Shown: positions 1 through 63,528, counted from the first letter of the stretch. The stretch: 64,000 bases of DNA from Isurus oxyrinchus (GCA_026770705.1 JANJGN010000071.1:1116001-1180000), one strand, 5' to 3'. Notes: generated by a model not told the origin, from the letters alone. Made by a program: numbers and translations.

Positions 1-129
1 GTGTCACTCTGACCTATACTTCTGTTCTGACCCTGATCCCATCACTCAAACACCACGGACACACTCTCAGCTGCAGAGTGAGATATCCATCTGTTTCATC
101 GGAGCGGACCCTCGTACTAACTGTACAAG
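1..129 (+). CDS. Gene A (activating-type Siglec-like): 3' part of C2-set Ig exon, truncated by window edge
   Basis: Reads VTLTYTSVLTLIPSLKHHGHTLSCRVRYPSVSSERTLVLTVQ; phase-1 donor CAAG|GTAAGA; first ~105 nt identical to 16001-16105. Confidence 0.85.
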
Positions 130-453
130 GTAAGAATGGACACCCTTCATTCTACATCAGCACTCCCTCAGCGCTGACCCTCTGACAGTGCAGCCCGTTC
201 TCAGTATCCACATTCTCAGACCTCTCAAAGTGCTTCACAGTCGATAGAAGTTAATTGATATTTATTTGATTATTGCTGAATGAAGAGACAAGCTGTCTAA
301 AGTTTTCATCTCACAGACAGTATTCTCCATGGCAACACCTCCACCTATCAGAGACCACTTGCCAACCAATCAGCACTCTCTTCCCATTAAGTATAAATTG
401 TTGTTCACTTTCTGTTGGTTATCGTGCGAACGGGCTTCTTGATTCCTGCCCTG

Positions 454-603
454 AGATCTTAATGTCCCAAAATTCAGAACAAGTTCCAACAATGAGCTGT
501 GGTTGGTGATTCCTCACGTTACATCCAGGGACATGGACACTATCAATGTGTTCAGAGAATGAACATGGAGCAGTGGAGGGGTTCATAACCATCACTGTGG
601 AAC
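454..603 (+). pseudogene. Gene A: 5'-truncated, frameshifted half of an Ig C2 exon (paralog of 20652/21870 exons)
   Basis: Matches the 3' half of 21870-22151 but has two 1-nt deletions (gacatgga vs gacactgga; tgtgttcag vs tgtgtggcag); 5' half and acceptor absent; donor AAC|GTGAGT kept. Confidence 0.8.
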
Positions 604-2278
604 GTGAGTGTACACAGACTTCAACATCTCTCTCAGATTCGAACACTACACAAACGCCCTCAAACATACAGACCTAAATAGACACGTGTAGACACACATA
701 TATGACCACACACAAAGACACACTCACAAACAAACACACTAGCACAAGACTCCCTCATGGGTTACCTGACCTCCCTCAGTACTGCACTGGAGAGTGGGCT
801 GCATTCTGGGATTTGTGTTCCCATTCGTATTTATGGAAGAATATGGAAATTACTCGTACAAACACTCAGATGCATAGAGGCACTCGTAGATACTATCTGC
901 TTCTCCAACTCTCTCTCTCTCCCTTTAAGGAGCTACCTGAAACCTAACCCTTTGACGAAGAACTAGTCCCAACTCCTCCTTATCTGATTCTGTGATTTCT
1001 TTTGTGTATCTGAGAGTAAAAGAGAGGTGAAGAGGTTTAGTACGAGAATTCTTGCTGGTGAAAAGCTTACATCTTGTTCTCATTATTTCCGTGCACATAT
1101 TTCCCAGTATGTCCAATGCCCCTGTTTATAATGATGACTGCCTATGTAAACGTCACGCTGTAGTTACAGCCTCCCACCAGTGGTGGCATTGTAGCACTTA
1201 ATCCTTGTGTTTCCCAGCTTTTCAAGCAACTCCACTTCCCAGTTTGCTACACAAGCTGTGAGTTCATCAGAATTAAATTATTTCTCAAACAGTAGATTTG
1301 ATAACTCATTTTATTGAAAACTTCCTCAGTGCCTCCCTGAAGGGTTTACACTCTCCGGGAAGCAGGAATAGGCTGGATGTTGGGGAGTTCATCTTTTCCC
1401 AGAGAGTAGGGATCCTCAGGAATGTGCTGTCAGTGGGTGTGGTGGTTGCTGATTCTCTGTCACCTTCAAGAGGGATCTGGAGTGGTTACTGACTGGGGGA
1501 GAGATCATGGAAGCGGAGAATGATACAGCACAGGAGGAGGCCATTCAGCCCATTGTGCCTGTGCCAGATCTTTCAATGATCTATCCAATCAGATCCACTA
1601 ACCACCACTCCACCTTGCCCCCATCTTCCTCCTTCAAGTGTTTATCCAATTTCCCTTTCGAAAGTTCCTATTGAATCTGCTTCCACCGCCCTTTCAGGCA
1701 GCACCTTCCAGATCACAACAACTCGCTCTGTCAAAACAAATTCTCCTCATCTCCCCCTCCGGTTCATCAATCTGTTTCCCTCTGGTTACCGACCCTCCTG
1801 CCCCTTAAATACATCAATACTATTCACCTCAACCACTCCCAGTGGGAGCGAGTTCCACATTCTCCCCTCTCTCTGGGTAAAGATTGGAACTGTTTATTAA
1901 GCGGGGGGTGTAAGTCCATGGGGGAGTCCATCTCGATCCTGCCCGATTCGCACACGCGTCCGAGATGGATTTCCACCCTGCACTAAACGTTTCCAGAATT
2001 TTCTACAGCACAATCCTGTACACAGCGATGGAGAGAAACACTGGACAGGGAGTCCAACAGCACAATGATCCATTCTCACCAATGTTCCACGCTAAGGGGA
2101 AAGTTCCGATTGTCCACTCTTAGAGTGTTTCCAATGAAAACATTCATTCCACATTGAATCCCAGTGGATGGGTCAATATTACAGCAAATGTTGCAGTGAT
2201 ATGAAGCTTGATTGTTCAGCCAGAGTGAGAGATTGAAAGCGGAGAGTCAGTGATGATTTCTTTCTGTGTGTTCTCTAG

Positions 2279-2418
2279 ACAGTGGAGGAGAGATTCTGCA
2301 CGTGATCCTGATCCTGGGAATACGAGCTGTGATATTCCTTGTGGCTGTGTTTATCACTATCACTGGAGTCTGTGTCTGGGAGAGACAAACAGTGAAAGGA
2401 AGTCGACAGACTGTTTGA
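2279..2418 (+). CDS. Gene A terminal exon: TM helix with intramembrane Arg and short tail
   Basis: Acceptor tttctgtgtgttctctag|AC (phase 1); SGGEILHVILILGIRAVIFLVAVFITITGVCVWERQTVKGSRQTV*; Arg codon 2323-2325; frame preserved in inverted copy 60676-60815; AATAAA at 3496. Confidence 0.8.
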
Positions 2419-2544
2419 AGCTTTGTACAGCAACAATCTGGTCAGTCAGTGCGGACAAATAACGTGTGATGTTGGGTTAAGTTGTAATGAAACTGATCAG
2501 TGTCCTGGTTAGAATCACCTTCGTATCAGAGAGGCATTCCAGCA

Positions 2545-3135
2545 CAGTGGGAGCCCATTCAGCCCATTGAGTCCATGCTGCCTCTCTGTAGAGCAATCCA
2601 CTCAGTCCCATTCCCCCGCTCTATCCCTGTATCTCTTCAAGTTTATTTCCCCTCAAGTGTCCGTCCAATTTCCTTTTGAAATTGTTCATCGTCTCCGCTT
2701 CCACCATCCTCGTAGGCAGCGAGTTCCAGCTCATTACCACTCGCTGTGTAAAAAAGTTCCTCCTCACATCCCCCCTCTGTCCAAAACCTTCAATCTGTGT
2801 CCCCCAGTCCTTGTCCCATCAGCTAATGGCAACAGCTTCTCTTTGTCTACCTTATCTAAACCCATCATCATCTTGTACACCTCGATCAGATCCCCCCTCA
2901 ATCTCCTTTGCTCCAAGGAGAACAACCCCAGCTTCTCCAACCCAACCTTGTAGCTAAAATCCCTCATCCCTGGACCCATTCTGCTCAATCTCCTCCCTAA
3001 CCTCTCAAGGACCCTCACTTCCTTCCCAAAGTGAGGAGACCAGAACTGGACACAATACTCTAGTTGTGACCTAACCAGAGCTTTATAAATGTTCAGCATA
3101 ACCTCCCTGTGTTTGTACTCAATCCCTCGATTTAT
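2545..3135 (-). mobile_element. CR1-type LINE 3' fragment
   Basis: ORF 2764-3234 contains the CR1 ORF2 C-terminus motifs LEYCVQFWSPH and LFSLEQRRLRGDLIEVYK. Confidence 0.85.
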
Positions 3136-3834
3136 GAAAAGCTTATTCTTTCCATCAGCACAAACAGCAATTTCCAAGCGGACTCCCATCAGCAGACAGA
3201 GTGCAATGAAACATCGGCATGCCTGCTTCTTCATGTACGGAGAGAAACCTGCAACGAGAGATTCTCCTTCTTCTCCTCAGCAAGCTGAAACTTTTCCTTA
3301 TACCTGGTGCTCCCCAGTCCTGCTGTGTGGACACATCATAACCACGGCATTGTCTGGCTGTGTGCAGCCAACATGGTCGAATAGGAATGAACAGAAATGT
3401 GACGTTGCTAAACTCTGTTCTCTGATTGGAATGTGCTTTCTGAATGCTGCACCTTTTTCATGCTGCGATAGATTGTAAGAAGCATTTGGGTTATGAATAA
3501 AATTACATTGATTTACTCAAGTGATTAAAATGCTCAGCCTTTTCTGTAGATATTTATAGATTAAAATTCTTATTTTGCTGCCAAATTTTTGGCTCAAAGA
3601 CATTACTTCATGTTGTCACATTTTCTCTATCATATGAATTCCTGTGCCCATCTTTATAATAGAAATTTCCCATGTAAACATGTCACATTGTAGTTGCACA
3701 CTCCTGCCAGTGGTGGTGACATTCCAAAGCTGTCTTGCTGCACCGACACAGTGAGAAATATTCTCGACGTGTACATGATGTTGTTGTTACACGGACATCA
3801 GGCGGAACCTTGGGCAGTGCCTAGAATGCACTTA

Positions 3835-4945
3835 GGACAGTGCAGACCACGCTCAGAACTGACAGTGCAGCGTTTCCTCAGTGCTGACCCTCCGTCAGTG
3901 CAGCGCTCCCTCATTACTGTCCCTCTGACAGTGCTGCACTACCTCATTATTGACCCTTTTCAAGTGCAGCACCCCGTCAGCACTGACCTTCTGACAGTGC
4001 AGCACTCCCTCATGGATGACAATCTGACAGTGCAGCACTCCCTCAGTCCTCACCCACCCACAGTGCAGCATTCCCTCAGTACTGTTCCTCTGATACTGTA
4101 TCCCTCCCTCACTACTGACCTTCCGACAGTTCGGCACTCCCTCGGTACACACCTTCTCACTGTGCAGCACTCCCACAGTGTTGACAAACTGACAGTGCAG
4201 CATTCCCTCAGTACTGACACTCCGACACTGTATCCCTCCCTCACTACTGACCTTCCGACAATTCAGCACTCCCTCAGTATTGACGCTCCCACAGTGCAGC
4301 ACTCCCTCAATTCTCACCCTCCCACAGTGCAGCCCTACCTCAGTACTCACTCTCCCAAAGTGCTGTGCGAGTTGTTTCAATCAAGACTGATGCCCAAAGA
4401 GGGAGGTTTCATTGCTAAATCATTGAAATCCGTGAAAATTATTTTTAGGCTTACGGGAACAAGACTTAGTTCCTCAAATCCTTTCTTTTGCAATAACACA
4501 CAGTACAAGAATCTCTGTTTAAATAAATTCCAGTTAAACTTTGCCATGAAAGGATATCTCCTCACGCTCCGCTGTACCTCAGTACTAACCCTCCCACAGT
4601 CCGGCACCACCTCAATACTGACCCTCCAACTGTGCGGAACTCACTCAGTACAGACCCTCTGACAGTGCAGCCCTCCCACATTACTGACCCTCTGACAGTG
4701 CAGCACTCCCTCATTACTGACCATCTGACAGTGCAGACCTCCCACATTACTGACCCTCTGACAGTGCAGCCCTCCCACATTATTGACCCTCTGACAGTGC
4801 AGCCCTCCCACATTACTGACCCTCTGACAGTGCAGCACTCCCTCATTACTGACCCTCTGACAGTGCAGCCCTCCCACATTACTGACCCTCTGATAGTGCA
4901 GCCCTCCCACAGTACAGTCCCACTGACAGTGCAGCATTCCCTGCG
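3835..4945. repeat. 33-bp minisatellite arrays (SINE-derived unit ctgacagtgcagcactccctcagtactgaccct)
   Basis: Two tandem blocks (3835-4355, 4560-4945); source of the TVQHSLSTDPL repeat ORFs. Confidence 0.9.
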
Positions 4946-5169
4946 TAATATAACAGGGATCGTTGAAATGAATCATAAGGCCAGAGACCTGCATTGGGAA
5001 CTCTTATCGCCTGAGTTTCAGCCTCCGAAGTGAGGGGCAGGAGTCTAATCCCACGGAGCCAATGGAGAAGCTTCATGACTACAGCTGCCCAAATATGAGC
5101 TGACAGATCATCACATGGTAAACGTTTTGCTGAGAGCCCAAAACATCCTCGATCTTCTCACTGGTTACC

Positions 5170-5310
5170 CACTTCCTCATTTTGTCTCACAGTGACACAT
5201 CCACCCTTTCTAATTAAACACACAGAGGGAGCAGCACAGGAAGAGGTCATTCAGCCCAAGCAGAGCGTGTGGGCAGTTCCTCCCCAGGCGAGCAGTCGGA
5301 CAGGTCCTGG
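5170..5310 (+). promoter_or_regulatory. Putative promoter and non-coding first exon of gene B, with PU.1/Ets-like site
   Basis: CACTTCCTCATT at 5170 (rc AATGAGGAAGTG); strong donor TGG|GTAAGT at 5310/5311; next acceptor ctttcag at 5718 precedes the leader ATG. Confidence 0.4.
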
Positions 5311-5760
5311 GTAAGTAACGGAACGATTGGAATTCACTTCCACCACCAACACCGTCCTTTGTTGATGTTGTGACTTTATAAAGACAGATTCCAATGATTG
5401 ATGCCTTTGAAAGATTTCTACTGGTTATTGAGATCTGGGTGTGAGACTCAAGTCTGTTGTACGGAACATCTTTCTAGCTCAAGGGATGAGGGAAGTGCAG
5501 AGACATGAGCTTTGGGACGTCTTGAGGTGGTGAAAGGTGCTATAGAAATGCAAATCCTTCAATGTTTTTCTTTCTTAAAGCCTTGTAACTCTCTGCAGAG
5601 CACCTATCATCCCACAGAAAATCAAATTAGTCTGTCAAGACATTGTCCAAAAACAGTTCTGATCTCTTGAGAGCTGTCGGACAAGAGGTGAGGTCTCATT
5701 AACTCCTTTCTCTTTCAGAGTTTGCGAGTCAGAAGCTTATGAAATATCTGGGAGTGGACA

Positions 5761-5800
5761 ATGATCGGGAAATCCTACTTCCTCCTGTCACTGCTCCAAG
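5761..5800 (+). CDS. Gene B leader (signal peptide) exon
   Basis: MIGKSYFLLSLLQ with phase-1 donor CAAG|GTAATA; splices in frame to either V exon; same LLQ|G ending as the gene C leader. Confidence 0.75.
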
Positions 5801-6799
5801 GTAATAACATCGTCAGCTTGGACAGGTTTATGGCTAATAGTCTTTGTAAAAGATCATTCTTATGGAGCTGTGATTGGGAACCGAGTCAGCAGTAAGCCAG
5901 TGTACAAACTCACACCAAGTCCCATTCACCCATCACCCCTGTGCTCACTGATATACACTGACTCCCTGTCTGACAGCAGAATTGGAGGAGTGCAGAGATC
6001 ACAGAGGGTTTTAGGGTTGGAGGAGGTTACAGGGATTGGGAGTGTAGAGGGGGGATGGTGGGGTAAGAAATCGATGATGAGAATTTGAAATTTGAGTCAT
6101 TGCTGGACTGGGAGCCAGTGTAGTTCAGCCAGTGACAGGGGAGCGATCGGCTGAATAGAGAATCAGGAATACCAACTGGGGGATGAAGTCTATCCTGATG
6201 CTGGGACTCGGATAACAATGCCCTGAAATTTTGTGTCTTTTGCTGATTTTGTCAGAATTTCCTATGAAGACAGCACAGCAGCTCCTAGAATAGACAGGCT
6301 GTTCAGTGTCACACTTCCTGTCCATTCTCACCATGCTAGATACTTCAATAAGGGAGCAAGATAACTGAAAGAGAGAAGGAAGGTAAAGCTGTCTGTGTGT
6401 AAAACTGTCAAATATTCTGAGTTATCATGATTGTCTCTGATCTGCTGCAGAGTTTAAAGTTCTCAGAACATTAGCACTTTGCAGCTCAGAGAGAGACCAT
6501 TGACTCACTGCCTGAAAGGGCGGTGGAAGCAGATTCAACAGGAACTTTCAGAAGGGGAACTAGATAAATACTTGAAGGGGACATTTTGCAGAGATGTGGT
6601 GGAGAGAGCAGAGGTTAGAGTGGGACTAATTGGACAGATCTTTCAAAGGCCCAGCACAGGCTCGATGGGCCAAATGGCATCCTTCAGTTCCGGATCATTC
6701 TACAATCTGATAAATTAAGCCCCACATCAGTAACTCTTCAGGCTCCTGCTGCAGGGATGGATCTTTGAGAAGGACAGGGAACAAGAGGTTCCTGGTATC

Positions 6800-11083: not shown

Positions 11084-11461
11084 TTGGATTGTCACAAGAG
11101 TGGAAAGGTGACACTCCACGAGAGGTGACAGCGCAGGAAGGTTCGTGTGTACAGATTCCATGTCATTACAGTTATCCATCAGATTTGGTAAAGAAACCAC
11201 AGGTCGGAATCTGGAAAATGAGAAGATACATACGGAACAAATGGTCTAAATGGTCTATAGCCTTTCACTCCAAGGGTCACAGTCGCGAGTTATCACAGTT
11301 CCACCATCGGACCCGGCTGTCTGGAGACCTGAAAGATGGCGACTGTTCCCTGATTATAAACAACATCAGATGGGAAGATGCAGGACCTTATTTTTTCACG
11401 ATAAAATTTGGCAATCGTCCGAGCCATAACTATTACCCTGAAACCCAGCTTCACGTTTCTG
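11084..11461 (+). CDS. Gene B V-set exon 1 (Siglec-type; essential Arg replaced by Thr)
   Basis: ccccag| acceptor and G|GTAAGT donor, phase 1/1, open frame; motifs GSCVQIPC and GDLKDGDCSLII; F strand YFFTIK (ACG at 11398). Confidence 0.85.
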
Positions 11462-11629
11462 GTAAGTGCTGTGTTATAATTACTCAACAATTCACATCCA
11501 ACACTCAATGGGAAATAATAGTGTTTGATTTGCTTGTTTTTTGGCCGTGTTAACCAGCGTCACTATTTTTAATGATTTGCCTATTTCTGCTCCCAGATCC
11601 ATGAGCTTATTGTGTCTGATTGAATCCAC

Positions 11630-12700: not shown

Positions 12701-12739
12701 ACAGTAATCTCCTCCTTTATTTTCATCCACGGCAACATT

Positions 12740-13690
12740 CCCTATCTCAGGAGCCTCCTCCAGTCCCTACAACCCTCTCTATCTCAGGAGCCTCCTCCAG
12801 TCCCTACAACCCTCCCTATCTCAGGAGCCTCCTCCAGTCCCTACAACCCTCCCTATCTCAGGAGACTCCTCCAGTCCCTACAACCCTCCTATCTCAGTAC
12901 CCTCTTCCAATCCCGAAAACCATTCCTATCACTGCAAACTCCTCTGGACCCAACACCCCTCCCTATCTCTTTAACCTCCTCAAGCCCCGATAACCCTCGC
13001 GATATTTGTAGCCTCCTCCAGTCCTAACAACCTCCCCTATCTCTGCAACCTCCTCCAGACCGAATACCTCTCCCTATCTCTGTCAGCTGGTCCATCTCTT
13101 ACAACCCATCATATTTCTGTAACCTCCTCCAGCCCACTACAACCCTCCCTATCTCTGTAACCTCCTCCAGTCCCTAAGAGTTTCCTTTATCTCTGTAACC
13201 TCCTCCAGCCATTATAACCCTCCCTATCTCTGTAGCCTCCCTCAGCCCCAGCCACACTCCATATCTATGTAACCTCGTCCTGCCCCTACAAACCTCCCTA
13301 TTTCTGTAACCCCATCCTGCCCCAAAAACTCCCCCATCTCTGTAAACTCCTCCAGTCCCTGCAACCTTCCCTACCTCTGGAACCTCCACCAGCCTTTCCA
13401 ACCCTCCCTACCTCTGCAATCCGTCCAGCCCCTACAACTCTTCCTATCCCTGTAAACTCCTCCTGCCCCTAAAACCCTCTCTGCCCTTGCAGCCTCCTCC
13501 AGTCCCTACACGCTCCCCATCTCCATAAACTCCTCAAATCCCTATAGCCCTCCCTATCTCTGCAACCTCCTCCAGGTCCTACCACCCTCCCTATCTGCGT
13601 AACCTCCTCCAGTATCTACAGCCCTCCCTATCTCTGTAACCTCCTCCAGCCCCCACAAACCTCCCTATCTGTGTAACCTCCTCCAGCCCC
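12740..13690. repeat. 37-bp minisatellite (ccctacaaccctccctatctctgtaacctcctccagc)
   Basis: Degenerate tandem array directly after the L2 fragment. Confidence 0.9.
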
Positions 13691-14650: not shown

Positions 14651-15019
14651 CTGAACCCTCACAAGAGTGGAAAGGTGACACTCCACGAGAGGTGACAGCG
14701 CAGGAAGGTTCGTGTGTACAGATTCCATGTCATTACAGTTATCCATCGTGTCTGGAAAACCAAACGCGAGGTGGAGTCTGGTTTAATAATGAGGAACAGA
14801 TTCCCTGGGCTCCCATTGCCTTTCACTCCAAGGATCACAGTCACGAGTTACCACGGTTCCACCATCGGACCCGGCTGTCTGGAGACCTGAAAGATGGCGA
14901 CTGTTCCCTGATTATAAACAACATCAGACGGGAAGATGCAGGACCTTATTATTTCAGGATAGAATTTGGCAATGGTCCGAGCCATAACTATTACCCTGTA
15001 ACCCAGCTTCACGTTTCTG
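14651..15019 (+). CDS. Gene B V-set exon 2 (Siglec-type; essential Arg retained)
   Basis: Phase 1/1 splice sites; GSCVQIPCHYSYP...GDCSLIINNIRREDAGPYYFRIEF; Arg codon AGG at 14956-14958. Confidence 0.9.
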
Positions 15020-15832: not shown

Positions 15833-16129
15833 ATTTCACAGATAAACCCACGATATTGCCTGCTGAAATTATTGCAGGAAAGCGTGTGGATGTAAGCTGC
15901 ACCTTCAACACAACGTGCAATGGAACAGCAGCACCTGTCTTAACCTGGGACACTCCCACTGACGTACCTGGATCAGTCTCAAACACTGTAACTCAGCATG
16001 GTGTCACTCTGACCTATACTTCTGTTCTGACCCTGATCCCATCACTCAAACACCACGGACACACTCTCAGCTGCAGAGTGAGATATCCATCTGTTTCATC
16101 GGAGCAGACCCTTATGCTAACTGTAAAAT
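15833..16129 (+). CDS. Gene B C2-set domain (Siglec domain-2 type)
   Basis: FTDKPTILPAEIIAGKRVDVSCTFNTTCNGTAAPVLTW...LSCRVRY; extra Cys typical of the Siglec V-C2 interdomain disulfide; ag/gt phase 1/1. Confidence 0.9.
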
Positions 16130-19680: not shown

Positions 19681-20651
19681 GGGGTGTTCGTGACCATCAG
19701 TGTGGAAGGGTTAGGTTTACAGGTTACACAGACCACACACGCACCAACAGACACACACACACATGNNNNNNNNNNNNNNNNNNNNNNNNNNNNNNNNNNN
19801 NNNNNNNNNNNNNNNNNNNNNNNNNNNNNNNNNNNNNNNNNNNNNNNNNNNNNNNNNNNNNNNNNNNNNNNNNNNNNNNNNNNNNNNNNNNNNNNNNNNN
19901 NNNNNNNNNNNNNNNNNNNNNNNNNNNNNNNNNNNNNCACATGCACACGCGCACACAGACAACACACACGCACACACAACNNNNNNNNNNNNNNNNNNNN
20001 NNNNNNNNNNNNNNNNNNNNNNNNNNNNNNNNNNNNNNNNNNNNNNNNNNNNNNNNNNNNNNNNNNNNNNNNNNNNNNNNNNNNNNNNNNNNNNNNNNNN
20101 NNNNNNNNNNNNNNNNNNNNNNNNNNNNNNNNNNNNNNNNNNNNNNNNNNNNNNNNNNNNNNNNNNNNNNNNNNNNNNNNNNNNNNNNNNNNNNNNNNNN
20201 NNNNNNNNNNNNNNNNNNNNNNNNNNNNNNNNNNNNNNNNTCAGTGCTGCACTGGAGTCTCGGTGTCAGCTCCGATTCTGTGCTGAAGGAAGGTAAACTC
20301 CAGATCAACAAGACCCTGAATTGGATGAGCAAAATCCTTAACAGAGAATTGTAGATTTACCCCTCAGTGCTCCATCGATTAAATATAATTCATTGCCTGT
20401 CAAGCCCTTGGGGACATCCTGAGGATGTGAAAGGGAGTTTCTTTAAATCCGGATGGGCAGGGTCTCTGGTGGGAGAATGCTCCTGCAGTGTGACAGTTTA
20501 CATAGGCAGTGCCCATTGTAAATGTGACATAGGAACTTATCTTGAGGGAAGGTGCCTAGAAATGCACACAGGCATCAGATACAGAGACATGATGCATGGA
20601 GTCTTGCTGTGCACAGTGCTTGCTCACATTAAATACTTGATTTGTTCTTAG

Positions 20652-20933
20652 ATGCTCCACAGAATCTCTCATTTACTTCTCTTGATATGATTAACGCTTC
20701 ATCGGTCAATATAATTGAGGGGAATTCTGCAGTGATAATCTGCTCTGTCGAGAGCTTCCCAGCTTCTAACCTGACGTGGCGACATCTTAATGTCCCAATG
20801 AACAGAACAAGTTCCAACAATGAGCTGTGGTTGGTGATTCCTCACGTTACATCCAGGGACACTGGAGACTATCTGTGTGTGGCAGAGAATGAACATGGAG
20901 CAGTGGAGGGGTTCATAACCATCACTGTGGAAC
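20652..20933 (+). CDS. Gene B Ig C2 exon (copy a of tandem pair)
   Basis: APQNLSF...CSVESFPASNLTW...DTGDYLCVAENEHG; 282 nt, phase 1/1. Confidence 0.9.
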
Positions 20934-21869
20934 GTGANNNNNNNNNNNNNNNNNNNNNNNNNNNNNNNNNNNNNNNNNNNNNNNNNNNNNNNNNNNNNNN
21001 NNNNNNNNNNNNNNNNNNNNNNNNNNNNNNNNNNNNNNNNNNNNNNNNNNNNNNNNNNNNNNNNNNNNNNNNNNNNNNNNNNNNNCCTGTCTCAGTGCTG
21101 CACTCGAGTCTCGGTAGCAGCTCTGATTCTGTGTTGAAGGAAGGTAAACTCCAGATCATCAAGACACTGAATTGGATGGAGCAACCTCCTGAACAGTGAA
21201 TTGTAGGTTTATCACCCAATACCCCATTATTCCAAAGCAATTCCTCCATGGTGAAATCTCCGTGAACATCCTGATCATGTGAAAGACACTTTCTTTTCTT
21301 CTAGCCTGACAGTGTCTCCTCTGGTGGAAGGCTGTAATTACAGCGTGACAGTTTACATATCCACACGCAGCAAGAGCTGAATAACACTCAGCTTGGGCTG
21401 AGAAATGACAAGTAATGTTCACACCACACAAGCACCAGGCAGTGATCATCTCCAACAAGAGAGAATCTAACCATCTCTCCTTGATATTCAATGACTTTCC
21501 CATCGCTGAATCCCCCACAATCCACATCCTGGGGGATGTTACCCAAACAACTAACTGGACCGGCCATAAATACTGTGGCTACAGGAGCCGGTCAGAGGCT
21601 GGGAATCCTCTGGAGGTGAAAAACTCACCACCACCTCCTCAAGGGCAATTAGGGATGGGTAATAAATGCTGGTCTAGATAGATACATCCACTTCCCATGA
21701 ATATGCAAAAAGGAACACACTGGCAGTGAATGTTACAAATGGTGACAGAGAAAATTATAATGGGGAAAGAAGCCTTGACATGCACATAGACACCAGATGG
21801 AGAGAGATGATACCTGGAGTCTTGCTGTGCACTGTGTTTGCTCACAATGAAACCTTTATTTGTATTTAG

Positions 21870-22151
21870 ATGCACCACGGAACCCATCAATTACTTCTCT
21901 TGATATGATTAACGCTTCATCGATCAATATAATTGAGGGGAATTCTGCAGTGATAATCTGCTCTGTCGAGAGCTTCCCAGCTTCTAACCTGACGTGGCGA
22001 CATCTTAATGTCCCAATGAACAGAACAAGTTCCAACAATGAGCTGTGGTTGGTGATTCCTCACGTTACATCCAGGGACACTGGAGACTATCAGTGTGTGG
22101 CAGAGAATGAACATGGAGCAGTGGAGGGGTTCATAACCATCACTGTGGAAT
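21870..22151 (+). CDS. Gene B Ig C2 exon (copy b of tandem pair)
   Basis: APRNPSI...DTGDYQCVAENEHG; 282 nt, phase 1/1; near-identical to 20652-20933. Confidence 0.9.
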
Positions 22152-24021: not shown

Positions 24022-24297
24022 ATCCCCCACAGGAGACGATGGTGTCCATCAGCAGATCCTCAGGTGGGATAAGAGAGGGAAGCAATATCACATTAACCTG
24101 CTCCAGTGAAAGTGTCCCACCGATATCTCATTACACCTGGTTCAGGATCGAGGGGAACACCAGCACCCAGTTAAATACAAGTAGCCGCACTCTCTCCTTC
24201 ACTCCTGTAACACGGGAGAATGATGCAGGTTTCTACTGCACAGCGAGGAACCCAATGGGTAACAGCACCTCCAACATCACACACCTGAACGTACAAT
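24022..24297 (+). CDS. Gene B Ig C2 exon
   Basis: PPQETMVSI...EGSNITLTCSSESVPPISHYTWF...DAGFYCTARNPMG; phase 1/1. Confidence 0.9.
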
Positions 24298-24649
24298 GTA
24301 AGCATTTTACTCCCCCTGTCTCTGCTTAAAACTCAAACACTTTCTGTCTGAGGGCAGCTTCCTTGCTGTTGTTTAGCATAACTAGCATCACCTCCCTGCT
24401 TTTTTCACCCTGCGCCTCTCCGAGATACATAAGGAGATATTAGAACAGGGACTGAAAGCTCAGAGAAAGAGGCCAGATTTTAAGGAGTGTCTGAAATGAG
24501 GAGAGAGATAGACATGGAGAGGTTTACGGTGGGAATTCTAGTACTCGGGGCCCAGGCAGCTGAAGGCACGGCCGCCAATGGTGGAGCGATAGGAATCGGG
24601 GGATGGTCAAGAGGCCGGAATTGGAGGAACGCAGAGACCTCGGAGGGAT

Positions 24650-25020
24650 GTAGATGCTGGAGGAGGTTACAGAGATAGGGAGGGTTGTGGGGTCTGGAGG
24701 AGGTTACAGAGATAGGGAGGGTTGTGATGGCTGGAGGAGGTAACAGAGATAGGGAGGGTTATAGGGGCTGGAGGAGGTAACAGAGATAGGGAGGGTTGTG
24801 ATGGCTGGAGGAGGTAACAGAGATAGGGAGGGTTATAGGGGCTGGAGGAGGTAACAGAGATAGGGAGGGTTGTAGATGCTGGAGGAGGTAACAGAGATAG
24901 GGAGGGTTGTGGGGTCTGGAGGAGGTTACAGAGATAGGGAGGGTTGAAGGGGCTGGAGGAGGTTACAGAGATAGGGAGGGTTGTAGATGCTGGAGGAGGT
25001 AACAGAGATAGGGAGGGAGT
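24650..25020. repeat. 37-bp minisatellite inside an L2-like fragment (reverse orientation)
   Basis: Tandem gctggaggaggttacagagatagggagggttgtaggg units. Confidence 0.9.
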
Positions 25021-51739: not shown

Positions 51740-52714
51740 CTTGCATTTCTCTAGCGCTTTCCAACACATCATGACGTCCCAAACTGTTTCGCGGACAATC
51801 AAGTGCTTTTTTTCTTTCATGTGAGGTCACTGATGTACTGTGGGAAAAGAATCAGCCATTGGCGCACTGTAAGATCCCACAGACAGCAGCATGATAATAA
51901 CCAGCGCACTCCCAGTACTTGCACTGCAAGTGTCAGTTCAGGGTGTCTGCTCGATTCTCTGCAACTCTCAGCTCTGAGTTAAAAGGACCACCAGGCGTAA
52001 TTGAGAAATTACCGAGCTGTCGGAGGGTCAGTACCGGCGGGGGGGCAGGACAGTCGGAGGGTCAGTACTGAGGGGGTGCTGCATTGTCAGACGGTCAGTT
52101 TTGGAGTGCTGCACTGCCAGAGGGTCAGTACCGGCAGGGGACTGCACAGTCGGAGGGTCAGTACTGAGGGGGTGCTGCATTGTCAGACGGTCAGTACTGA
52201 GGGAGTGCTGCACAGTCGGAGGGTCAGTACTGAGGGGGTGCTGCACTGTTGAAGGCGCTGTCTTTCAGATGAGATGTTAAACTGAGACAACATCTGCCCT
52301 CTCAGATGGATGTAGAGGATTCCATGGCCACAATTTAAATGAAGTGTTTCAGGAGTTGGGTGTATGTGTGGAGGGGGTGGTGCGGGGTGGATGGGATGCA
52401 GTTATGTCCGCTTTCCTGGGGCAAACATTTATCCCTCAACTGACTTTGGTAAAAAACTGAAAATCGGGGCCATTATCACATTTCTGTTTGTGGGATCTTG
52501 CTGTGCGTGAATTGCCTGCTGCGTTTCCTACATTACAGCGGTGAGCTCACTTCAGAAAAAGTCCTTCCTTCAGCTGTGGAACACTTTGGGCCATCCTGAG
52601 GAGGGGAAAGGCGCTATAGAAATGCGCCATCCTCCTTCCAATGACGCGCCTGATTGAAATGATGCCTTCTTTCTTTCCGGAATGTTCTCACCTATTGTCC
52701 TCCTGCTTTTCCAG

Positions 52715-52831
52715 GGCTCCTTGCTGCAGCGCCAGAAGAGAATGGGCAGACAGCAGCTCTGCATATTCTGCTGTAACTGCTGTAATTGGAGAGAACCAAA
52801 TGAGACTTGTGGTCTCTGCTGTAGATATTAG
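52715..52831 (+). CDS. HAMP: Hepcidin-like gene exon 3 (furin site and mature 8-Cys peptide)
   Basis: Acceptor cctgcttttccag|; GSLLQRQKR-MGRQQLCIFCCNCCNWREPNETCGLCCRY*; C-x2-CC-x-CC-xn-C-G-x-CC hepcidin pattern; AATAAA at 53669. Confidence 0.88.
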   Translation, partial: GSLLQRQKRMGRQQLCIFCCNCCNWREPNETCGLCCRY

Positions 52832-53278: not shown

Positions 53279-53320
<42 letters not shown>

Positions 53321-55309: not shown

Positions 55310-57270
55310 GTCACATCCAGTCGTGGACAATTAAACAACTCACTGGAGGAGGAGGCTCCACAAATATCCCCATCCTCAATGATGGAGGAGCCCAGCACAT
55401 CGGTGCAAAAGACAAGACTGAAGCATGCGCAACAATCTTCAGCCAGAAGTGCTGAGTGGCTGATCCATCTCGGCCTCCTCCGGAGGTCCCCAGCATCACA
55501 GATGCCAATCTTTAGCCAATTCGATTAATTCCACGTGACATCAAGAAAGGGCTGAAGGCACTGGATATTGCAAAGGCTCCAGGCCCTGACAATATTCTGG
55601 CAATAGTACTGAAGACTTGTGCTCCAGAACTTGCTGCGCCCCTAGCCAAGCTTTTCTGGAATTTTCTAGTACAGCTGCAACACTGGCAACTACCCGGCTA
55701 TGGGGTACGTCCTGTACACAAAAAGCAGGACAAATCCAACCCAGCCAATTCCCCAGCAGTCTATTCTTGATCATTACTAAAGTGATGGAAGGGGTCATCA
55801 ACAGCGCTTGCAAGCAGCACCTGCTTACCAAGAACCTGCTCACTGACGCTCAGTTTGTGTTCCACCAGGATCATTCAGCTCCTGGCCTCATTACAGCCTT
55901 GGTTCAAACATGCACAAATGAGCTGAACTCCAGAGGTGAGAGGGACTGCCCTTGACATCAAGGCAGCATTTGACTGAGTGTGGCAAAACAAGGAGCCCGA
56001 GCAAAACTGGAGTCAATGGGAATCGGGGGAAAACTCTCCGCTGCTTGGAGTCATACCCAGCACAAAGGACGATGGTTGTGATTATTGGGGGTCAATCATC
56101 TCAGTTCCAGGACATCACTGCAGGAGTTACTCAGGGTAGTGTCCTAGGCTCAAACATCGTCAACTGCTTCATCAATGACCTTCCTTCCATCATAAGGTCA
56201 GAAGTGGGGATGTTTGCTGATATTTGCACAATGTTCAGCACCATTCACAGCTCCTCAGATACTGAAGCAAGTTATGTCCAAATGCAGCAAGACCTGGACA
56301 ACATCCAGGCTTGGGCTGACAGGTGACAAGTAACATTCATGCCACACAAGTACCAGGCAATGACCAGCTCCAACAAGAGAGAATCTAATTGAAGGTGCAG
56401 AAAATTTGGATTTATGTTCAAGAGCCAGCCAGGACCAGCAGCTAGGGCGCCAAAGCGTACACATCCTTACGTGAAAACTTAAAAACCTGTACTAAGGGCT
56501 CAGTTGGAAATTTGCAATGAGGAAATGGGAGACACACACACAAGGACACTGGGTGACTCAATCAAGAAATGGGGAAGGTTATTTCACACCGTCCGATGGC
56601 CTTGAACCACATCCAGTCAGCCTCCGGAAACCTTTTGTATTGAACAAACATAGATTCTTTGCTGTCTCAAAAGGACAATAGCCAGTCTCTGCCCTGTAAT
56701 TACTGAACAAGAACACAATTATCAGCCCACCGGAGGATCATTGTGCTGTGGCCTTTGTCTAACTAATACCATTACCTTGTAACTGAGAGTAAAAATATAT
56801 AAACTGTGCTCATTTGAACCTCGGTGGAGAAGCACCTGGACTGCCCAGCGTTTGCTCCCCACATGCGTAATAAAGGAACCACTTGAATATTGCATCTGGA
56901 GTCCGAGTGTTGAAATTTTGTACCAGAATATTCCACAGACCATTCATAACCATCTCCCCTTGACATTCAATGGCATTACCATCAATAAATCCCCCAATAT
57001 CAACATCCTGGGAGTTACCATTGAGCAGAAACTGAACTGGACCAGCCATATAAACACTGTGGCTGCAAGAGCAGGTCAGAGGCTGGGAACCCTGCAGACA
57101 GTAACTCACCTCCTGACTCCCCAAAGCCTGTCCACCATCTACAACGCACAAGTCAGGAGTGTGATGGAATACTCTCCACATGCCTGGATGAGTGCAGCTC
57201 CAACAACACTCAAGAAGCTCGACACCATCCAGGACAAAGCAGCCCGATTGATTGGCTCCCCTTCCACAGA
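55310..57270 (+). mobile_element. LINE RT fragment (CR1-like)
   Basis: AGVTQGSVLG, FINDL, MFAD, YNAQVRSVMEYS motifs; frameshifted. Confidence 0.85.
56390..56946 (+). mobile_element. Solo LTR nested in the LINE
   Basis: TGAA...TTCA ends; TAAT/TAAC 4-bp TSD; internal TATATAAA and AATAAA; splits gagaatctaaccatc. Confidence 0.75.
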
Positions 57271-58761
57271 GCTAGATAGATTCTTGATTAACAAGGGGGT
57301 GAAAGGTCATTGGGGGTAGACAGGAATGTGAGGTTGAGGTGACAATCAGATCAGCCATGATCTTACTGAATGGCGGAGCAGGTTCGAGGGACTGAGTGAC
57401 CTACTCCTGATCCTAACTCAGATATCCAGATGTTCTCAAAGGCAATTGGGGATGGGCAACAAATACTGGCCTAGTCAGCGACACCAACATCTCTGAAATG
57501 AATAAGAAAAAAATGTATCAATCAATTAAATTTATTGATTAATCGAATTGAAATTCCTCCAGCTGCCGTGGTGGGATTTGAACCCGTGCCTTCAAAGCAT
57601 TCACCTGGGCCTCTGGATCACTGGCCTAGTGCCATTCCCATTGTGCGACTGTCTGCTATCATCATGGCTCTTTCACATCGATGTGGAAGTCCTGATAACA
57701 GAAGCATTGGATGAGGTACAGAAAGGTGACAAATCAGGAGCTCCATTGCTCAATATGAACGGATAATAAAGATAAATGAACATAAACCTTCCAGTCGCTA
57801 ATTAGGGAGTCACTGTGGAGCCCATTAGTCCCTCGCAGCGCTATTGTAACCTTCTGGATCCCCAGTAGGGGACTCGGGGTGCAGCTGTGTCTTCCTCATC
57901 ATTTGGAAAAGCCGGAATTGTTCGGGTGCCCCTTCAAACAGGCCGAAGATGCAGTGGGTGATGTCTCCCACAGGCCCTGGGAGACCTCCCCTGCCAATTT
58001 GTTTTGTAGCTTATTCTTCAACTGCGACATTGGATCAGCTTGAAAAAGGGTGAGGCTGAGGCAATACCACCAGGTAAGCGTCTATCCCCACACACGTCAC
58101 CCCCCCCACCCCCGTAACCATCACAGTCCCTCCCATCGTGCTGGAGGAGCATAATGTGCACATTCCCCTCCTTCCAATCAGTCTCCTCCCTTCCTCTCTA
58201 ATCCTTGATCTTATTGTGTTCGGGGTTGACATCCCAGTCCTCCTCCCTAGACTGTCTGATGTTGACATCCCAATGCCCCATGTAGACCTGACCTCTCTCC
58301 AACTAGAGGCCCATTGTACTGTGACTTACAGAGACCACCGGCCCCCCTCGATTCCCACCCCCACCCCTACCCTCTATATTACCTGCTCCCCACTGACAGG
58401 CTGCAGATGCCTCCCCTGACTGGGATTGTGCCACCTGCGGCCTAGTATCAAGCCACCCACCCCCAGGATGGACGTGTGTGAGGGACTGACCACGTCACTC
58501 ACACCATGCTGGGCACCACCAACCCAGGACTGCCAGGCTGTCCCCACCACACTGGACTGGGACTAGAATAGGCGTGCCAAGCACAGCTCTCTAAATCGTG
58601 GCGCAGATCCACAGCACTCGCAATGTTTTGTGGCCCGAATCCTTGCTGAGGAACTGCCCAGCACTAAAAGCAAAAAAACTGCAGATGCTGGAAATCCAAA
58701 ACAGAAACAGAAACAGAAATACCTGGAAAAACTCAGCAGGTCTGGCAGCATCGGCGGAGAA

Positions 58762-59345
58762 GTACTGAGGTAGTGCGGCACTGTCGGAGGTTCAGTACTG
58801 AGGGAGTGCTGCACTGTCGGAGGTTCAGTCCTGAGGGAGTGCTGCACTGTCGGAGGGTCTGAACTGAGGGAGTGCTGCACTGTCGGAGGCTCTGAACTGA
58901 GGGAGTGCTGCACTGTCGGAGGCTCTGAAATGAGGGAGTGCTGCACTGTCGGAGGGTTTGAACTGAGGGAGTGCTGCACTGTCGGAGGGTCTGAACTGAA
59001 GGAGTGCTGCACTGTCGGAGGGTCTGAACTGAGGGAGTGCTGCACTGTTGGAGGGTCTGAAATGAGGGAGTGCTGCACTGATGGAGGGTCTGAACTGAGA
59101 GAGTGCTGCACTGTCGGAGGTTCTGAACTGAGGGAGTGCTGCACTGTCTGAGGGTTTGGACTGAGGGAGTGCTGCACAGTCGGAGGGTCTGAACTGAGGG
59201 AGTGCTGCACTGTCAGAGGGTTTGAACTGAGGGAGTGCTGCATTGTCGGAGGGTCTGATCTGAAGGAGTGCTGCACTGTAGGAGGGTCTGAACTGAGGGA
59301 GTGCTGCGCTGTTGGAGGGTCAGTACTGAGGGAGTGCTGCGCTGT
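58762..59345. repeat. 33-bp minisatellite
   Basis: gggtctgaactgagggagtgctgcactgtcgga units. Confidence 0.9.
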
Positions 59346-60675
59346 CTAAAGAACATTGTACAAATTGCACAAAATTGCATCTGATGCCTGTGTCTCATGC
59401 TAACATGAAGTTCATGCACACAACAGGAATATTTCTCGCTGTTTCTCGACAGCAAGACAGCTTTGATATCACACCAGCCACTGGCAAGTTTGTGCAGCTA
59501 CAATGTGACATGTTTACATTGGAAATTTCTATTATAAAGATGGACAGAGGAATTCATCTGATTGGAAAACGTGACAACATGAAGTAATGTCTTTGAGCCA
59601 AGTATTTTGCAGCAAAACAAGAATTTTAATCTTTAAATATCTACAGAACAGCCTGAACATTTTAATCACTTGAGTTAATCAATGTAATTTTATTCATAAC
59701 CCAAATGCTTCTTACAATCTATTGCAGCATGAAAAAGGTGCAGCATTCAGAAAGCACATTCCAATCAGAGAACAGAGTTTAGCAACGTCACATTTCTGTT
59801 CATTCCTATTCGACCATGTTGGCTGCACACAGCCAGACAATGCCGTGGTTATGATGTGTCCACACAGCAGGACTGGGGAGCACCAGGTATAAGGAAAAGT
59901 TTCAGCTTGCTGAGGAGAAGAAGGACAATCTCTCGTTGCAGGTTTCTCTCCGTACATTAAGAAGCAGGCATGTCGATGTTTCATTGTACTCTGTCTGCTG
60001 ATGGGAGTCCGCTTGGAAATTGTTGTTTGTGCTGATGGAAAGAATAAGCTTTTCATAAATGGAGGGATTGAGAACAAACACAGGGAGGTTACGCTGAACA
60101 TTTATAAAGCTCTGGTTAGGTCACAACTAGAGTATTGTGTCCAGTTCTGGTCTCCTCACTTTGGGAAGGAAGTGAGGGTCCTTGAGAGGGTGGGGAGGAG
60201 ATTGAGCAGAATGGGTCCAGGGATGAGGGATTTTAGCTACAAGGTTGGGTTGGAGAAGCTGGGGTTGTTCTGCTTGGAGCAAAGGAGATTGAGGGGGGAT
60301 CTGATCGAGGTGTACAAGATGATGATGGGTTTAGATCAGGTAGACAAAGAGAAGCTGTTGCCATTAGCTGATGGGACAAGGACTGGGGGACACAGATTGA
60401 AGGTTTTGGGCAGAGGGGGATTTGAGGAGGAACTTTTTTACACAGTGAGTGGTAATGAGCTGGAACTCACTGCCTACAAGGATGGTGGAAGCGGAGACGA
60501 TGAACGATTTCAAAAGGAAATTGGACGGACACTTGAGGGGAAATAAACTTGAAGGGATACAGGGATAGAGCGGGGGAATGGGACTGAGTGGATTGCTCTA
60601 CAGAGAGGCAGCATGGAGTCAATGGGCCGAATGCCGTTCTTCTGTTTCATGATGAGATTGTTGCTGTACAAATCT

Positions 60676-60815
60676 TTAAACAGTCTGTCGACTTCCTTTC
60701 ACTGTTTGTCTCTCCCAGACACAGACTCCAGCGATAGTGATAACCACAGCCACAAGGAATATCACAGCTCGTATTCCCAGGATCAGGATCACGTGCAGAA
60801 TCTCTCCTCCACTGT
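60676..60815 (-). pseudogene. Gene D terminal TM-Arg exon (exon intact, gene disabled upstream)
   Basis: SGGEILHVILILGIRAVIFLVAVVITIAGVCVWERQTVKGSRQTV*; acceptor ttgtctag|. Confidence 0.75.
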
Positions 60816-62478
60816 CTAGACAACACACAGAAAGAAATCATCACTGACTCTCCGCTTTCAATCTCTCACTCTGGCTGAACAATCAAGCTTCATATCACTG
60901 CAACATTTGCTGTAATATTGACCCATCCACTGGGATTCAATGTGGAATGAATGTTTTCATTGTAAACACTCTAAGAGTGGACAATCGGAACTTTCCCCTT
61001 AGCGTGGAACATTGGTGAGAATGGATCATTGTGCTGTTGGACTCCCTGTCCAATGTTTCTCTCCATCGCTGTGTACAGGATTGTGCTGTAGAAAATTCTG
61101 GAAACGTTTAGTGCAGGGTGGAAATCCATCTCGGACGTGTGTGCGAATCGGGCAGGATCGAGATGGACTCCCCCACGGACATACACCCCCCGCTTAATAA
61201 ACAGTTCCAATCTTTACCCAGAGAGAGGGGAGAATGTGGAACTCGCTCCCACAGGGAGTGTGTGATGTGAACACTATCGATGTATTTAAGGGGCGGGAGG
61301 GTCGGTAACCAGAGGGACACAGATTGACGAACCGGAGGGGGAGATGAGGAGAATTTGTTTTGACAGAGCGAGTTGTTGTGATCTGGAAGGTGCTGCCTGA
61401 AAGGGCGGTGGAAGCAGATTCAATAGGAACTTTCAAAAGGGAAATTGGATAAACACTTGAAGGAAGAAGAAGGGGGCAAAGTGGTGTGGTGGTTAGTGGA
61501 TCTGATTGGATAGAACATTGAAAGACCTGGCACAGGCACAATGGGCTGAATGGCCTCCTCCTGTGCTGTATCATTCTCCGTTTCCATGATCTCTCCCCCA
61601 GTCAGTAACCACTCCAGATCCCTCTTGAAGGTGACAGAGAGACAGCAACCACCACACCCACTGACAGCACATTCCCGAGGATCCCTACTCTCTGGGAAAA
61701 GATGAAGTCCCCAACATCCAGCCTAATCCTGCTTCCCGGAGAGTGTAAACACTTCAGGGAGGCGTTGAGGAAGTTTTCAATAAAATGAATTATCAAATCT
61801 ACCGTTTGAGAAATAATTGAATTCCGATGAACTCCCAGCTTGTGTAGCAAACTGGGAAGTAGATTTGCTTGAAAAGCTGGGAAACACAAGGATTAAGTGC
61901 TACAATGCCACCACTGGTGGGAGGCTGTAACTACAGTGTGACGTTTACATAGGCAGTCATCACTATAAACAGGGGCTTTGGACATAATGGGCACGGAAAT
62001 AGTGAGAACAGGATGTAAGCTTTTCATCAGCAGGAATTCTCTTACTAAACCTCTCCACCTCTCTCTTACTCTCAGATTCACAAAAAATTCACAGAATCAG
62101 ATAAAGAGGAGTTGGGACTAGTTATTCGTCAACGGGTTAGGATTCAGGTAGCTCCTTGAAGGGAGAGAGAGAGTTGGAGAAGCAGAGAGTATCTATGAGT
62201 GCCTCTATGCATCTGAGTGTTTGTATGAGTAATTTCCATATTCTTCTATAAATATGAATGGGAACACAAATCCCAGAATTCAGCCCACGCTCCAGTGTAG
62301 TACTGAGGGAGGTCAGGTAACCCATGAGGGAGTCTTGTGCTAGTGTGTTTGTTTGTGAGTGTGTCTTTGTGTGTGGTCATATATGTGTGTCTGCACGTGT
62401 CTATTTAGGTCTGTACGTTTGAGGGTGTTTGTGTAGTATTCGAATCTGAGAGAGATGTTGATGTCTGTGTACACTCAC

Positions 62479-62630
62479 ATTCCACAGTAATGGTTATGAA
62501 CCCCTCCACTGCTCCATGTTCATTCTCTGCCACACACTGATAGTCGCCAGTGTCCCTGGATGTAACGTGAGGAATCACCAACCACAGCTCATTGTTGGAA
62601 CTTCTTCTGTTCATTGGGACATTAAGATGT
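62479..62630 (-). pseudogene. Gene D 5'-truncated half Ig exon
   Basis: LNVPMNRRSSNNELWLVIP...DTGDYQCVAENEHG; same 5' breakpoint as 454-603 but without the frameshifts. Confidence 0.8.
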
Positions 62631-63154
62631 CAAGGAGGGAATCAAGAACCCCGTATGCACAATTACCAACAGAAAGTGAACAACAATTTATACTTAATGG
62701 GAAGACAGTGCTGATTGGTTGGCAAGTGGTCTCTGATAGGTGGAGGTGTTGCCGTGGAGAATGGTGTGTGCGAGATGTAAAGTTTAGACAGCTTGTCTCT
62801 TCATTCAGCAATAATCAAATAAAGATCAATTAACTTCTATCGACTGTGAAGCATTTTGAGAGGCCTTAGAATGTGGATACTGAGAATGAGCTGCACTGTC
62901 AGAGGGTCAGCGCTGAGGGAGTGCTGATGTAGAATGAAAGATGTCGGTACAGTTAATGCTTTTCATCATTGATATTAAAGTGATTTTTAGAGGGTGCTTT
63001 AGGACTGAACTGGAAGCTATCACCAGGTTATTGAGAATCAGACAGTGTGTTATAATAAGCTGTGTTTTGTGTTATTATGTAAACGTCACAGTTTGTGTTA
63101 TTTCCCATTGAGTGTTGGATGTGAATTGTTGAGTAATTATAACACAGCACTTAC

Positions 63155-63528
63155 CAGAAACGTGAAGCTGGGTTACAGGATAGTAGCTGTAACTATTCCT
63201 GCTGTCAAACTCTATTCTGAAAAAATAAGGTCCTGCATCTTCCCGTCTGATGTTGTTTATAATCAGGGAACAGTCGCCATCTTTCAGGTCTCCAGACAGC
63301 CGGGTACGATGGCGGAATCTTTGATCCCTGTGATTGTGACCCTCGGAGTGAAAGGCTATAGACCATTTAGGCTGTGGGTTCCCATCTATTCCTTTCAACC
63401 AGATTCTGCACGTGATCTCCCTACGAAATTTGATAAGTAACTGTAATGACATGGAATCTGTACACATGAACCTTCCTGTGCTGTCACCTCTCATGGAGTG
63501 TCACCTTTCCACTCTTGTGACAGTCCAA
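63155..63528 (-). pseudogene. Gene D Siglec-type V-set exon with nonsense and frameshift mutations
   Basis: CGA>TGA at 63491-63493; 1-nt deletion before the C-strand Trp; retains YFFRIEF and both splice sites. Confidence 0.85.

Follow-up and report, generated by a model that had tools for sequence, protein, structure and literature searches.

A probable paired Siglec-like receptor cluster enclosing a hepcidin-family gene in Isurus oxyrinchus

Fast-evolving CD33-related sialic acid-binding Ig-like lectins (Siglecs) that bear ITIMs (immunoreceptor tyrosine-based inhibitory motifs), together with their activating partners, are regarded in reviews as a feature of mammals, and one study, on teleosts, states that CD33-related members are absent from fish genomes (PMC7226832). 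In the human pairs SIGLEC5/SIGLEC14 and SIGLEC11/SIGLEC16, one partner carries a tail of the type with an ITIM and an immunoreceptor tyrosine-based switch motif (ITSM), and the other has a basic residue in its transmembrane (TM) segment, arginine (Arg) in Siglec-14, followed by a short tail (PMC4042635, PMC13358205). Here, we describe a stretch of 64,000 nucleotides (nt) from the shark Isurus oxyrinchus (GCA_026770705.1 JANJGN010000071.1:1116001-1180000), hereafter the window, which contains Siglec-like genes A to D and a gene of the hepcidin family. The window is probably part of a large, recently reshuffled lamniform Siglec-like cluster, in which gene B is of inhibitory type, gene A is of activating type, genes C and D are decayed and the hepcidin gene lies inside. 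Sharks evidently have a large family built on the same plan, in which the Arg-anchored activating form has been retained.

The likeness to the human pairs consists of neighbouring genes, V-set and C2 ectodomains that are similar within a lineage, and opposite tail types. In contrast to those pairs, the genes described here belong to a much larger, elasmobranch family with a third, tyrosine-rich tail type; A and B are 93% identical at the nucleotide level, whereas the human pairs are above 99%; and two V exons and repeated C2 exons occur in one gene. The likeness is put forward without a claim of orthology to the 19q13.4 cluster. The closest described sequences are Gnomon models of sharks and rays in RefSeq ('myeloid cell surface antigen CD33-like', 'sialic acid-binding Ig-like lectin 7/8/10/12/13/14'), for example XP_041037190.1 of Carcharodon carcharias and XP_072325011.1 of Scyliorhinus torazame. 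They represent the same family, with the same exon types and with both Arg-bearing TM and ITSM tails; their names are automatic, and the lectin numbers imply no orthology to mammalian genes. Literature searches found no descriptive paper on shark or chondrichthyan Siglecs. The sequences are already in RefSeq under automatic names, and the gain lies in description and interpretation rather than in unknown sequence.

The exons (Table 1) were mapped by six-frame translation, a scan of hydropathy, checks of splice phase, and tblastn, for which exons of the window itself and 150 relatives served as queries; the relatives revealed no Ig exons in the window beyond those mapped. All homology searches were run per exon or with database proteins, and no joined spliced protein model was used. 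When the second V exon of gene B was used as the query of a profile search, 1316 relatives were returned. Those with names are shark and ray models in RefSeq that go under 'CD33-like' or 'sialic acid-binding Ig-like lectin N', and the closest are great white shark models, with 90–100% amino acid identity per exon. The window DNA is vertebrate-like, with a CpG observed/expected ratio of 0.31, many satellites and fragments of long interspersed nuclear elements, and seven N gaps. An initial annotation, made from the sequence alone, had presumed a cartilaginous fish; the named relatives bear this out and point to a lamniform shark, the great white being nearest.

Gene B has AG/GT splice sites and consistent phases in 13 coding exons (one tail cassette counted) and in the two exons of the second cassette. 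The Ig exons are of phase 1-1, the TM exon leads from phase 1 to 2, and the tail exons from 2 to 0 and then from 0 to the stop. Its signal peptide recurs unchanged at the N-termini of models P0003, P0013 and P0155 (great white and basking shark), and its C2a exon encodes three Cys, as in the pattern of Siglec domain 2. The 3' end agrees with what the initial annotation had assigned to gene B, namely a neutral TM exon followed by ITIM/ITSM exons. In tail cassette 2, LLYANI is a canonical ITIM and TEYAQI an ITSM, which is the arrangement of CD33-related tails (an ITIM plus a distal ITIM-like motif or ITSM). The tail exons form a tandem duplication, 26711–28732 versus 29252–31691, with 82–92% nucleotide identity and a stop in each copy. 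The duplication is old, because each cassette type terminates separate RefSeq models of other lamniform sharks (type 1, P0014; type 2, P0003 and P0163).

Gaps touch gene B at its C2b exons. Two of them (19766–19937 and 19981–20240) lie beside microsatellites in the intron 5' of the first C2b exon, and a third (20938–21085) begins 3 nt past the GT donor of the C2b exon 20652–20933, so no coding frame is broken by a gap. The remaining four (35.3–38.0 kb) fall in the DNA between genes B and C, where no exon was found. Since a unit of about 1.2 kb, consisting of an intron and a C2b exon, is tandemly repeated in gene B and relatives have up to eight C2b domains, collapsed extra copies may be hidden in the gaps, and two is a minimum for the number of C2b exons.

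The Siglec identity of gene B is clearest in its second V domain (V2). The best PDB matches of V2 are Siglec-5 (58.9 bits, 5.5e-15) and MAG (58.8 bits, 6.1e-15), followed by Siglec-7 (6.3e-14), Siglec-8, CD33, Siglec-10 and sialoadhesin; Siglecs occupy each of the first 17 places among the PDB sequences (5.5e-15 to 8.3e-12). Siglec-15 (35.5 bits) and CD22 (25.7 bits) are both far behind Siglec-5 and MAG. The V2 segment YYFRIEF aligns with YFFRVE of Siglec-5, conserving the sialic-acid Arg of strand F, the residue in contact with the carboxylate, and SCVQIPC and GDCSL align with Siglec-5 in the cysteine pattern of Siglecs (CxxxPC in strand B, Cys in strand E). Most relatives retain this Arg. 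Judged by these alignments, gene B is a Siglec at the domain level; its V domain groups with Siglecs and not with other families of the immunoglobulin superfamily. Two V-set domains are also known from human and chimpanzee Siglec-12. Gene B has two in-frame tandem V exons, and relatives are modelled as V-V (P0003, P0153–P0155); the V duplication of gene B is independent of that in Siglec-12.

Only the 3' part of gene A lies in the window. Residues encoded at positions 3–128 match the RefSeq model P0230 in 42 of 42 cases. Downstream of C2a lies a relic of the 3' half only of a C2b exon, with 93% nucleotide identity to the C2b exons of gene B. In the TM exon with Arg (TM-Arg exon), the Arg stands in ILGIRAV about one third of the way into the membrane segment, and WERQTVKGSRQTV and the stop follow. 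The tail has 13 residues, lacks tyrosine and ends in KGSRQTV, and shark models in RefSeq have C-termini with 77–96% identity to the exon. An intron of the 3' untranslated region (3'UTR), 2441–3158, begins 23 nt after the stop. The TM-Arg exon of gene A is located 2.8 kb upstream of the first exon of gene B, a linkage of the kind that paired receptors have.

To this exon structure we compared public contigs from four runs (three studies, two organism labels), presumed to be RNA, which were aligned to positions 1–6000 of the window. A joint between positions 129 and 2279 with GT..AG ends was found in four of the four runs. It coincides exactly with the predicted C2a donor and TM acceptor, bypasses the dead C2b, and keeps the reading frame ...LVLTVQ-DSGGEIL..., as in the great white model P0157. 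The runs are presumed to be RNA, and the canonical splice argues for this. The transcript joining an Ig exon to the TM-Arg exon, on which the initial annotation had made its proposal depend, is therefore seen in RNA-like contigs; this holds at the least for the family, and probably also for the locus itself. Gene A has a basic TM residue, a short tail free of tyrosine and spliced RNA-like contigs (possibly paralogue-derived), as is characteristic of an activating partner. As had been proposed, the TM exons of A (2279–2417) and D (60815–60678, minus strand) share the Arg and have no tyrosine motif; their stops, TGA and TAA, occupy the same codon, and in the TM segment A has Phe and Thr at the residues that are Val and Ala in D.

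The ectodomain exons of the copies had also been described as near-identical, which overstates their similarity. The C2a exons of A and B show 93.2% nucleotide and 88.7% amino acid identity in a comparison that rests on 127 nt of C2a; the leader and V exons of gene A are beyond the window start. The V exons are 86–89% identical in nucleotides overall, and an 85-column core with indels is 49–67% identical. These exons are mosaics (cores at 11180–11260, 14745–14815 and 63440–63360), with identities of 92–96% in the 5' flank, 83–95% in the 3' flank and 100% in 24 nt of the upstream intron. The mosaic suggests diversifying selection or patchy conversion. Judging from its position, the hypervariable core would correspond to the loops that set Siglec specificity.

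Among models of three shark orders (Lamniformes, Carcharhiniformes and Orectolobiformes), the TM-Arg tail hardly varies: the core VILILGIRA is common to all, and those tails that are full-length terminate at KGSRQTV or close to it. RefSeq models with the order V-C2-TM-Arg are present in the great white (P0157), small-spotted catshark (P0156, P0158), cloudy catshark (P0084, P0006) and bamboo shark (P0025). The Arg-anchored form has thus been kept for well over 100 million years, which is our own estimate of the time since these shark orders parted. A stingray model (P0173, Hypanus sabinus) also has a TM segment with Arg (ISLAVRGVLFLL) and a short tail, which suggests that the Arg anchor predates the shark/ray split.

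In a tree of 53 C2a domains, where the non-elasmobranch sequences were tree shrew CD33 and two turtle sequences, the clades follow lineage, and Arg, ITSM and tyrosine-rich tails are intermixed in each clade. Forcing the seven Arg forms into one clade cost 58.8 log-likelihood units and was rejected by the approximately unbiased (AU) test (p-AU 0.00075); the group of Arg forms was named from the hypothesis, and the test was run after the tree had been inspected. The Arg form P0154 and the ITSM form P0191, each with 646,030 bases given as its longest contig and hence probably from the same contig, show zero differences across the 97 kept C2a columns, both end branches being 0. Conserved signalling ends of great age together with ectodomains that are alike in each lineage are the signature of paired receptors shaped by gene conversion or exon shuffling.

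The initial annotation had left a choice between an ancestral and an independently expanded system. All shark and ray sequences fall in one clade, apart from the three tetrapod sequences, and the choice is only partly answered by this. A more far-reaching idea, to which we give a low probability, is that a Siglec module with three tails (ITIM/ITSM, TM-Arg and tyrosine-rich), with ectodomains in concerted evolution and tied to hepcidin, dates at least to the elasmobranch ancestor and may be the ancestral state of the MAG/CD22-HAMP region. If this were true, the sensing of sialic acid by paired receptors would have arisen early in vertebrates and not first in mammals, whose CD33-related Siglecs would descend from it. 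In the shark family, the question of why paired sensors of sialic acid arise, and of how gene conversion keeps their ectodomains alike, can be asked in an independent system.

A functional proposal for A and B can be drawn from pairs of the Siglec-5/14 type (PMC4042635, PMC13358205). Gene B would encode a long inhibitory-type receptor whose tail comes from one of the two tandem cassettes; its V2 domain would bind a sialylated or other ligand, and phosphatases recruited to the tail tyrosines would damp the cell. Gene A would encode a short activating-type receptor, with C2a spliced past the dead C2b onto the TM-Arg exon. Receptors of the A type would bind similar ligands, and the buried Arg would pair with an acidic residue of an adaptor with an immunoreceptor tyrosine-based activation motif (DAP12 or FcR-gamma type), activating the cell; such a separate adaptor chain would be their only route of signalling. 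Our guess is that DAP12 is a better fit than FcR-gamma, given that the Arg lies mid-membrane; a literature search for DAP12 in cartilaginous fish gave nothing usable. It is thus by analogy that we predict binding of sialic acid, recruitment of phosphatases by B, coupling of A to an adaptor and opposite signals from the two on ligands that they share. Gene D is an inverted recombined copy in which a V exon was joined to the 3' half of A and which has decayed, and gene C is a stump of a V exon.

Several observations weigh against this picture of an inhibitory B and an activating A. The RNA evidence consists entirely of assembled contigs with 95–99% identity, from runs that are only guessed to be RNA. 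The genome has many paralogues, from which some contigs at this level of identity surely stem, and the spliced contigs may derive from a sister copy instead of this locus; those labelled X4 and X5 read TAA and an extra T, like D-like copies and unlike gene A. The leader and V exons of gene A lie outside the window, and a pairing of A and B at the binding domain is a prediction. The first V domain of gene B (V1) has Thr and not the sialic-acid Arg, one G>C change having turned AGG into ACG. Finally, cassette 1 has no canonical ITIM: its FLYANP is a YxN site, accompanied by TEYAQI.

Some of these observations would also fit a different reading, in which the receptors are Siglec-shaped, fast-evolving and polymorphic but are not, or are no longer, sialic-acid sensors, the V core recognising other ligands such as pathogen proteins while the activating/inhibitory logic is kept. 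The loss of the Arg both in V1 and in the V exon of gene C speaks for it, as does the low identity of the V core between copies, with its indels, and sialic-acid binding is here a prediction from sequence. However, V2 keeps the Arg in a YxFRxE context, its Siglec-specific Cys align with Siglec-5, and the Arg is kept in most relatives; we therefore consider this reading improbable.

Still less probable, in our estimate, is that the TM-Arg exons of the window are leftovers, that only gene B works, and that the spliced TM-Arg transcripts come wholly from paralogues elsewhere. Gene D is clearly decayed, gene A contains a dead C2b exon, and differences of up to 3% separate A from the contigs with the joint, all of which speaks for this reading. 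Against it, the C2a end, donor, acceptor, frame and stop of A are all intact, a contig in X1 is 99.4% identical over the intron/exon border of A (1978–2287), and the TM-Arg exon is clearly constrained across shark orders. The reading of the window as part of a cluster with an inhibitory B and an activating A is the one that we retain.

Table 1. Positions of the Siglec-like and hepcidin-family features in the window
Feature	Position	Strand	Remarks
Gene A C2a exon, 3' part	3-129	+	Window starts within exon; open frame, GT donor after it; 5' side of RNA joint
Gene A C2b relic (3' half)	453-611	+	Stops and frameshift; skipped in RNA-like contigs
Gene A TM-Arg exon	2279-2440	+	AG acceptor, phase 1; TGA at 2415-2417, then 3'UTR and GT donor
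Gene A probable 3'UTR exon	3159-3603	+	Contigs of every run cover 3154-3603; their loose end behind 2440 fits 3159
Small exon	5226-5310	+	Joint of 5310 to 5719 (gene B leader), GT..AG ends, in X4 and X5 contigs
Gene B, overall	5.7-31.7 kb	+	Intact; leader, two V-set, five C2, neutral TM, two tandem tail cassettes
Gene B leader exon	5719-5800	+	ATG at 5761; signal peptide MIGKSYFLLSLLQ
Gene B V-set exon 1 (V1)	11084-11461	+	Pfam V-set 3.3e-12; splice sites and phase intact; YFFTIKF
Gene B V-set exon 2 (V2)	14651-15019	+	Pfam V-set and Ig_CD22; Arg kept, YYFRIEF
Gene B C2a exon	15833-16129	+	Pfam C2-set_2 3.4e-9; PDB matches include MAG and CD33 domain 2; phase 1-1
Gene B C2b exon, copy 1	20652-20933	+	Pfam Ig_3 and I-set; GT donor present
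Gene B C2b exon, copy 2	21870-22151	+	93.8% amino acid identity with copy 1
Gene B C2c exon	24022-24297	+	Pfam search, splice/phase check
Gene B C2d exon, membrane-proximal	25328-25621	+	60-75% identity with shark models; phase 1-1
Gene B neutral TM exon	26506-26602	+	Hydropathy scan, DNA sequence, phase 1 to 2
Gene B tail cassette 1	27309-27390, 28476-28724	+	Two exons; FLYANP, TEYAQI, stop; 80.8% identity with tail of great white P0014
Gene B tail cassette 2	29864-29945, 31435-31683	+	Two exons; LLYANI, TEYAQI, stop; 85.9% identity with tail of basking shark P0003
Gene C V exon (single, diverged, Siglec-type)	43290-43586	+	Best PDB matches: sialoadhesin, Siglec-5, MAG
Hepcidin-family exon 1 (signal peptide)	48140-48231	+	Hydrophobic leader; donor AG/GTTAAG
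Hepcidin-family last exon (exon 3)	52715-52831	+	Good acceptor, RQKR site, eight Cys; Pfam PF06446 31.5 bits, cut-off 27
Gene D TM-Arg exon, intact	60678-60815	-	98.6% nucleotide identity with A; acceptor intact, TAA stop; 3'UTR donor lost
Gene D C2b relic (3' half)	62471-62631	-	98.1% nucleotide identity with gene B copy 2; stops upstream
Gene D V exon, dead	63078-63529	-	CGA>TGA stop; net -4 nt frameshift versus V1

Gene D lies in an inverted duplication in which 62945–58811 corresponds to positions 139–4363 of the gene A region with 88–95% identity. Its V exon retains the Arg but is dead, and this exon with about 130 nt of its intron is fused to a point just after the C2a exon; no C2a exon of gene D was found in the window. 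The fusion reflects a recombination that deleted C2a. As assembled, gene D is a pseudogene, unless exons outside the window rescue it. The idea that it is a second activating gene was rejected in view of the V-exon lesions and the missing C2a. The initial annotation, which had treated D as an activating partner of B on a par with A, is thus partly confirmed in what it observed and partly supported in how it interpreted this: inhibitory- and activating-type members and a hepcidin gene are present, while one proposed partner has a stop and a frameshift in its V exon, lacks the first C2 exon and retains of the second a half relic that contains stops, and the shared exons are not near-identical. 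In gene C, Gln stands at the position of the Arg, the frame ends in YYTQF and runs into gag-like open reading frames (ORFs), and no further exons were found. These retroelement ORFs, with a CHHC zinc knuckle (43648–44650), are inserted exactly at the break of the V exon.

The embedded hepcidin-like gene reported by the initial annotation was recovered, its last exon exceeding the Pfam cut-off (Table 1). A TATA box (TATAAGAG) lies about 75 nt upstream of exon 1. A scan for exon 2 by splice sites and phase gave two weak candidates, one of them within a repeat; a 55-nt candidate at 51972–52026 is phase-compatible but weak. Exon 3 used as a query gave no candidate in a search of 5.8 billion proteins and no match among PDB sequences. 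The encoded peptide resembles HAMP in its furin-type RQKR site and in its eight Cys, arranged as CIFCC..CC..C..CC; it differs in an inner loop of 8 residues (4 in HAMP) and in a mature N-terminus unlike the mammalian DTHFPI.

On the human map, MAG is adjacent to HAMP, and a hepcidin gene beside Siglec genes is what the window shares with the mammalian MAG/CD22-HAMP-USF2 region (human 19q13.1). In contrast to that region, V2 here is not closer to MAG than to CD33-related Siglecs, and CD22 scores far lower. Gene B was considered as an orthologue of CD22 or MAG, as its hepcidin neighbour suggested, and this was rejected: with the low CD22 score and MAG no better than Siglec-5, one-to-one orthology is not claimed. 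Neither a USF2 nor an FFAR gene was seen in the window. In mammals, HAMP, USF2 and MAG are located near FFAR2 (PMC4453067), and the neighbourhood of Siglec and hepcidin genes is therefore probably an old synteny. The locus allows a test of whether the hepcidin link is mere synteny or a co-amplified defence.

The small exon upstream of the gene B leader is homologous to a cytoplasmic exon of the third, tyrosine-rich tail type (P0013, P0230), with 81% identity to residues 268–294 of P0013. The 12 letters that precede it in the contigs fit the end of a TM exon of the ECVRK type. The neutral TM exon of the tyrosine-rich type, ending in ECVRK, and the corresponding tail were searched for within the window, and neither is present there. 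The small exon may have been recruited as a 5'UTR exon; alternatively, it may stem from read-through or belong to a paralogue's transcript. Past the gene B leader exon, a loose end of the RNA-like contigs continues into the start of a V exon.

Repeats are found throughout the window. Arrays of a 33-bp satellite are located at 3859–4942, 27976–28330, 31095–31370, 40349–40668, 49568–49868, 52000–52260 and 58761–59346. This satellite contains long spurious ORFs (LSTDPLTVQHS...) and recurs beside gene ends and just upstream of the last hepcidin exon. A second satellite of about 37 bp forms three arrays (12733–13690, 24642–25017 and 48425–49511), one inside gene B and one in the intron that follows exon 1 of the hepcidin gene. 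Positions 40737–42154 form a long internal tandem repeat, with 74–86% identity between its copies.

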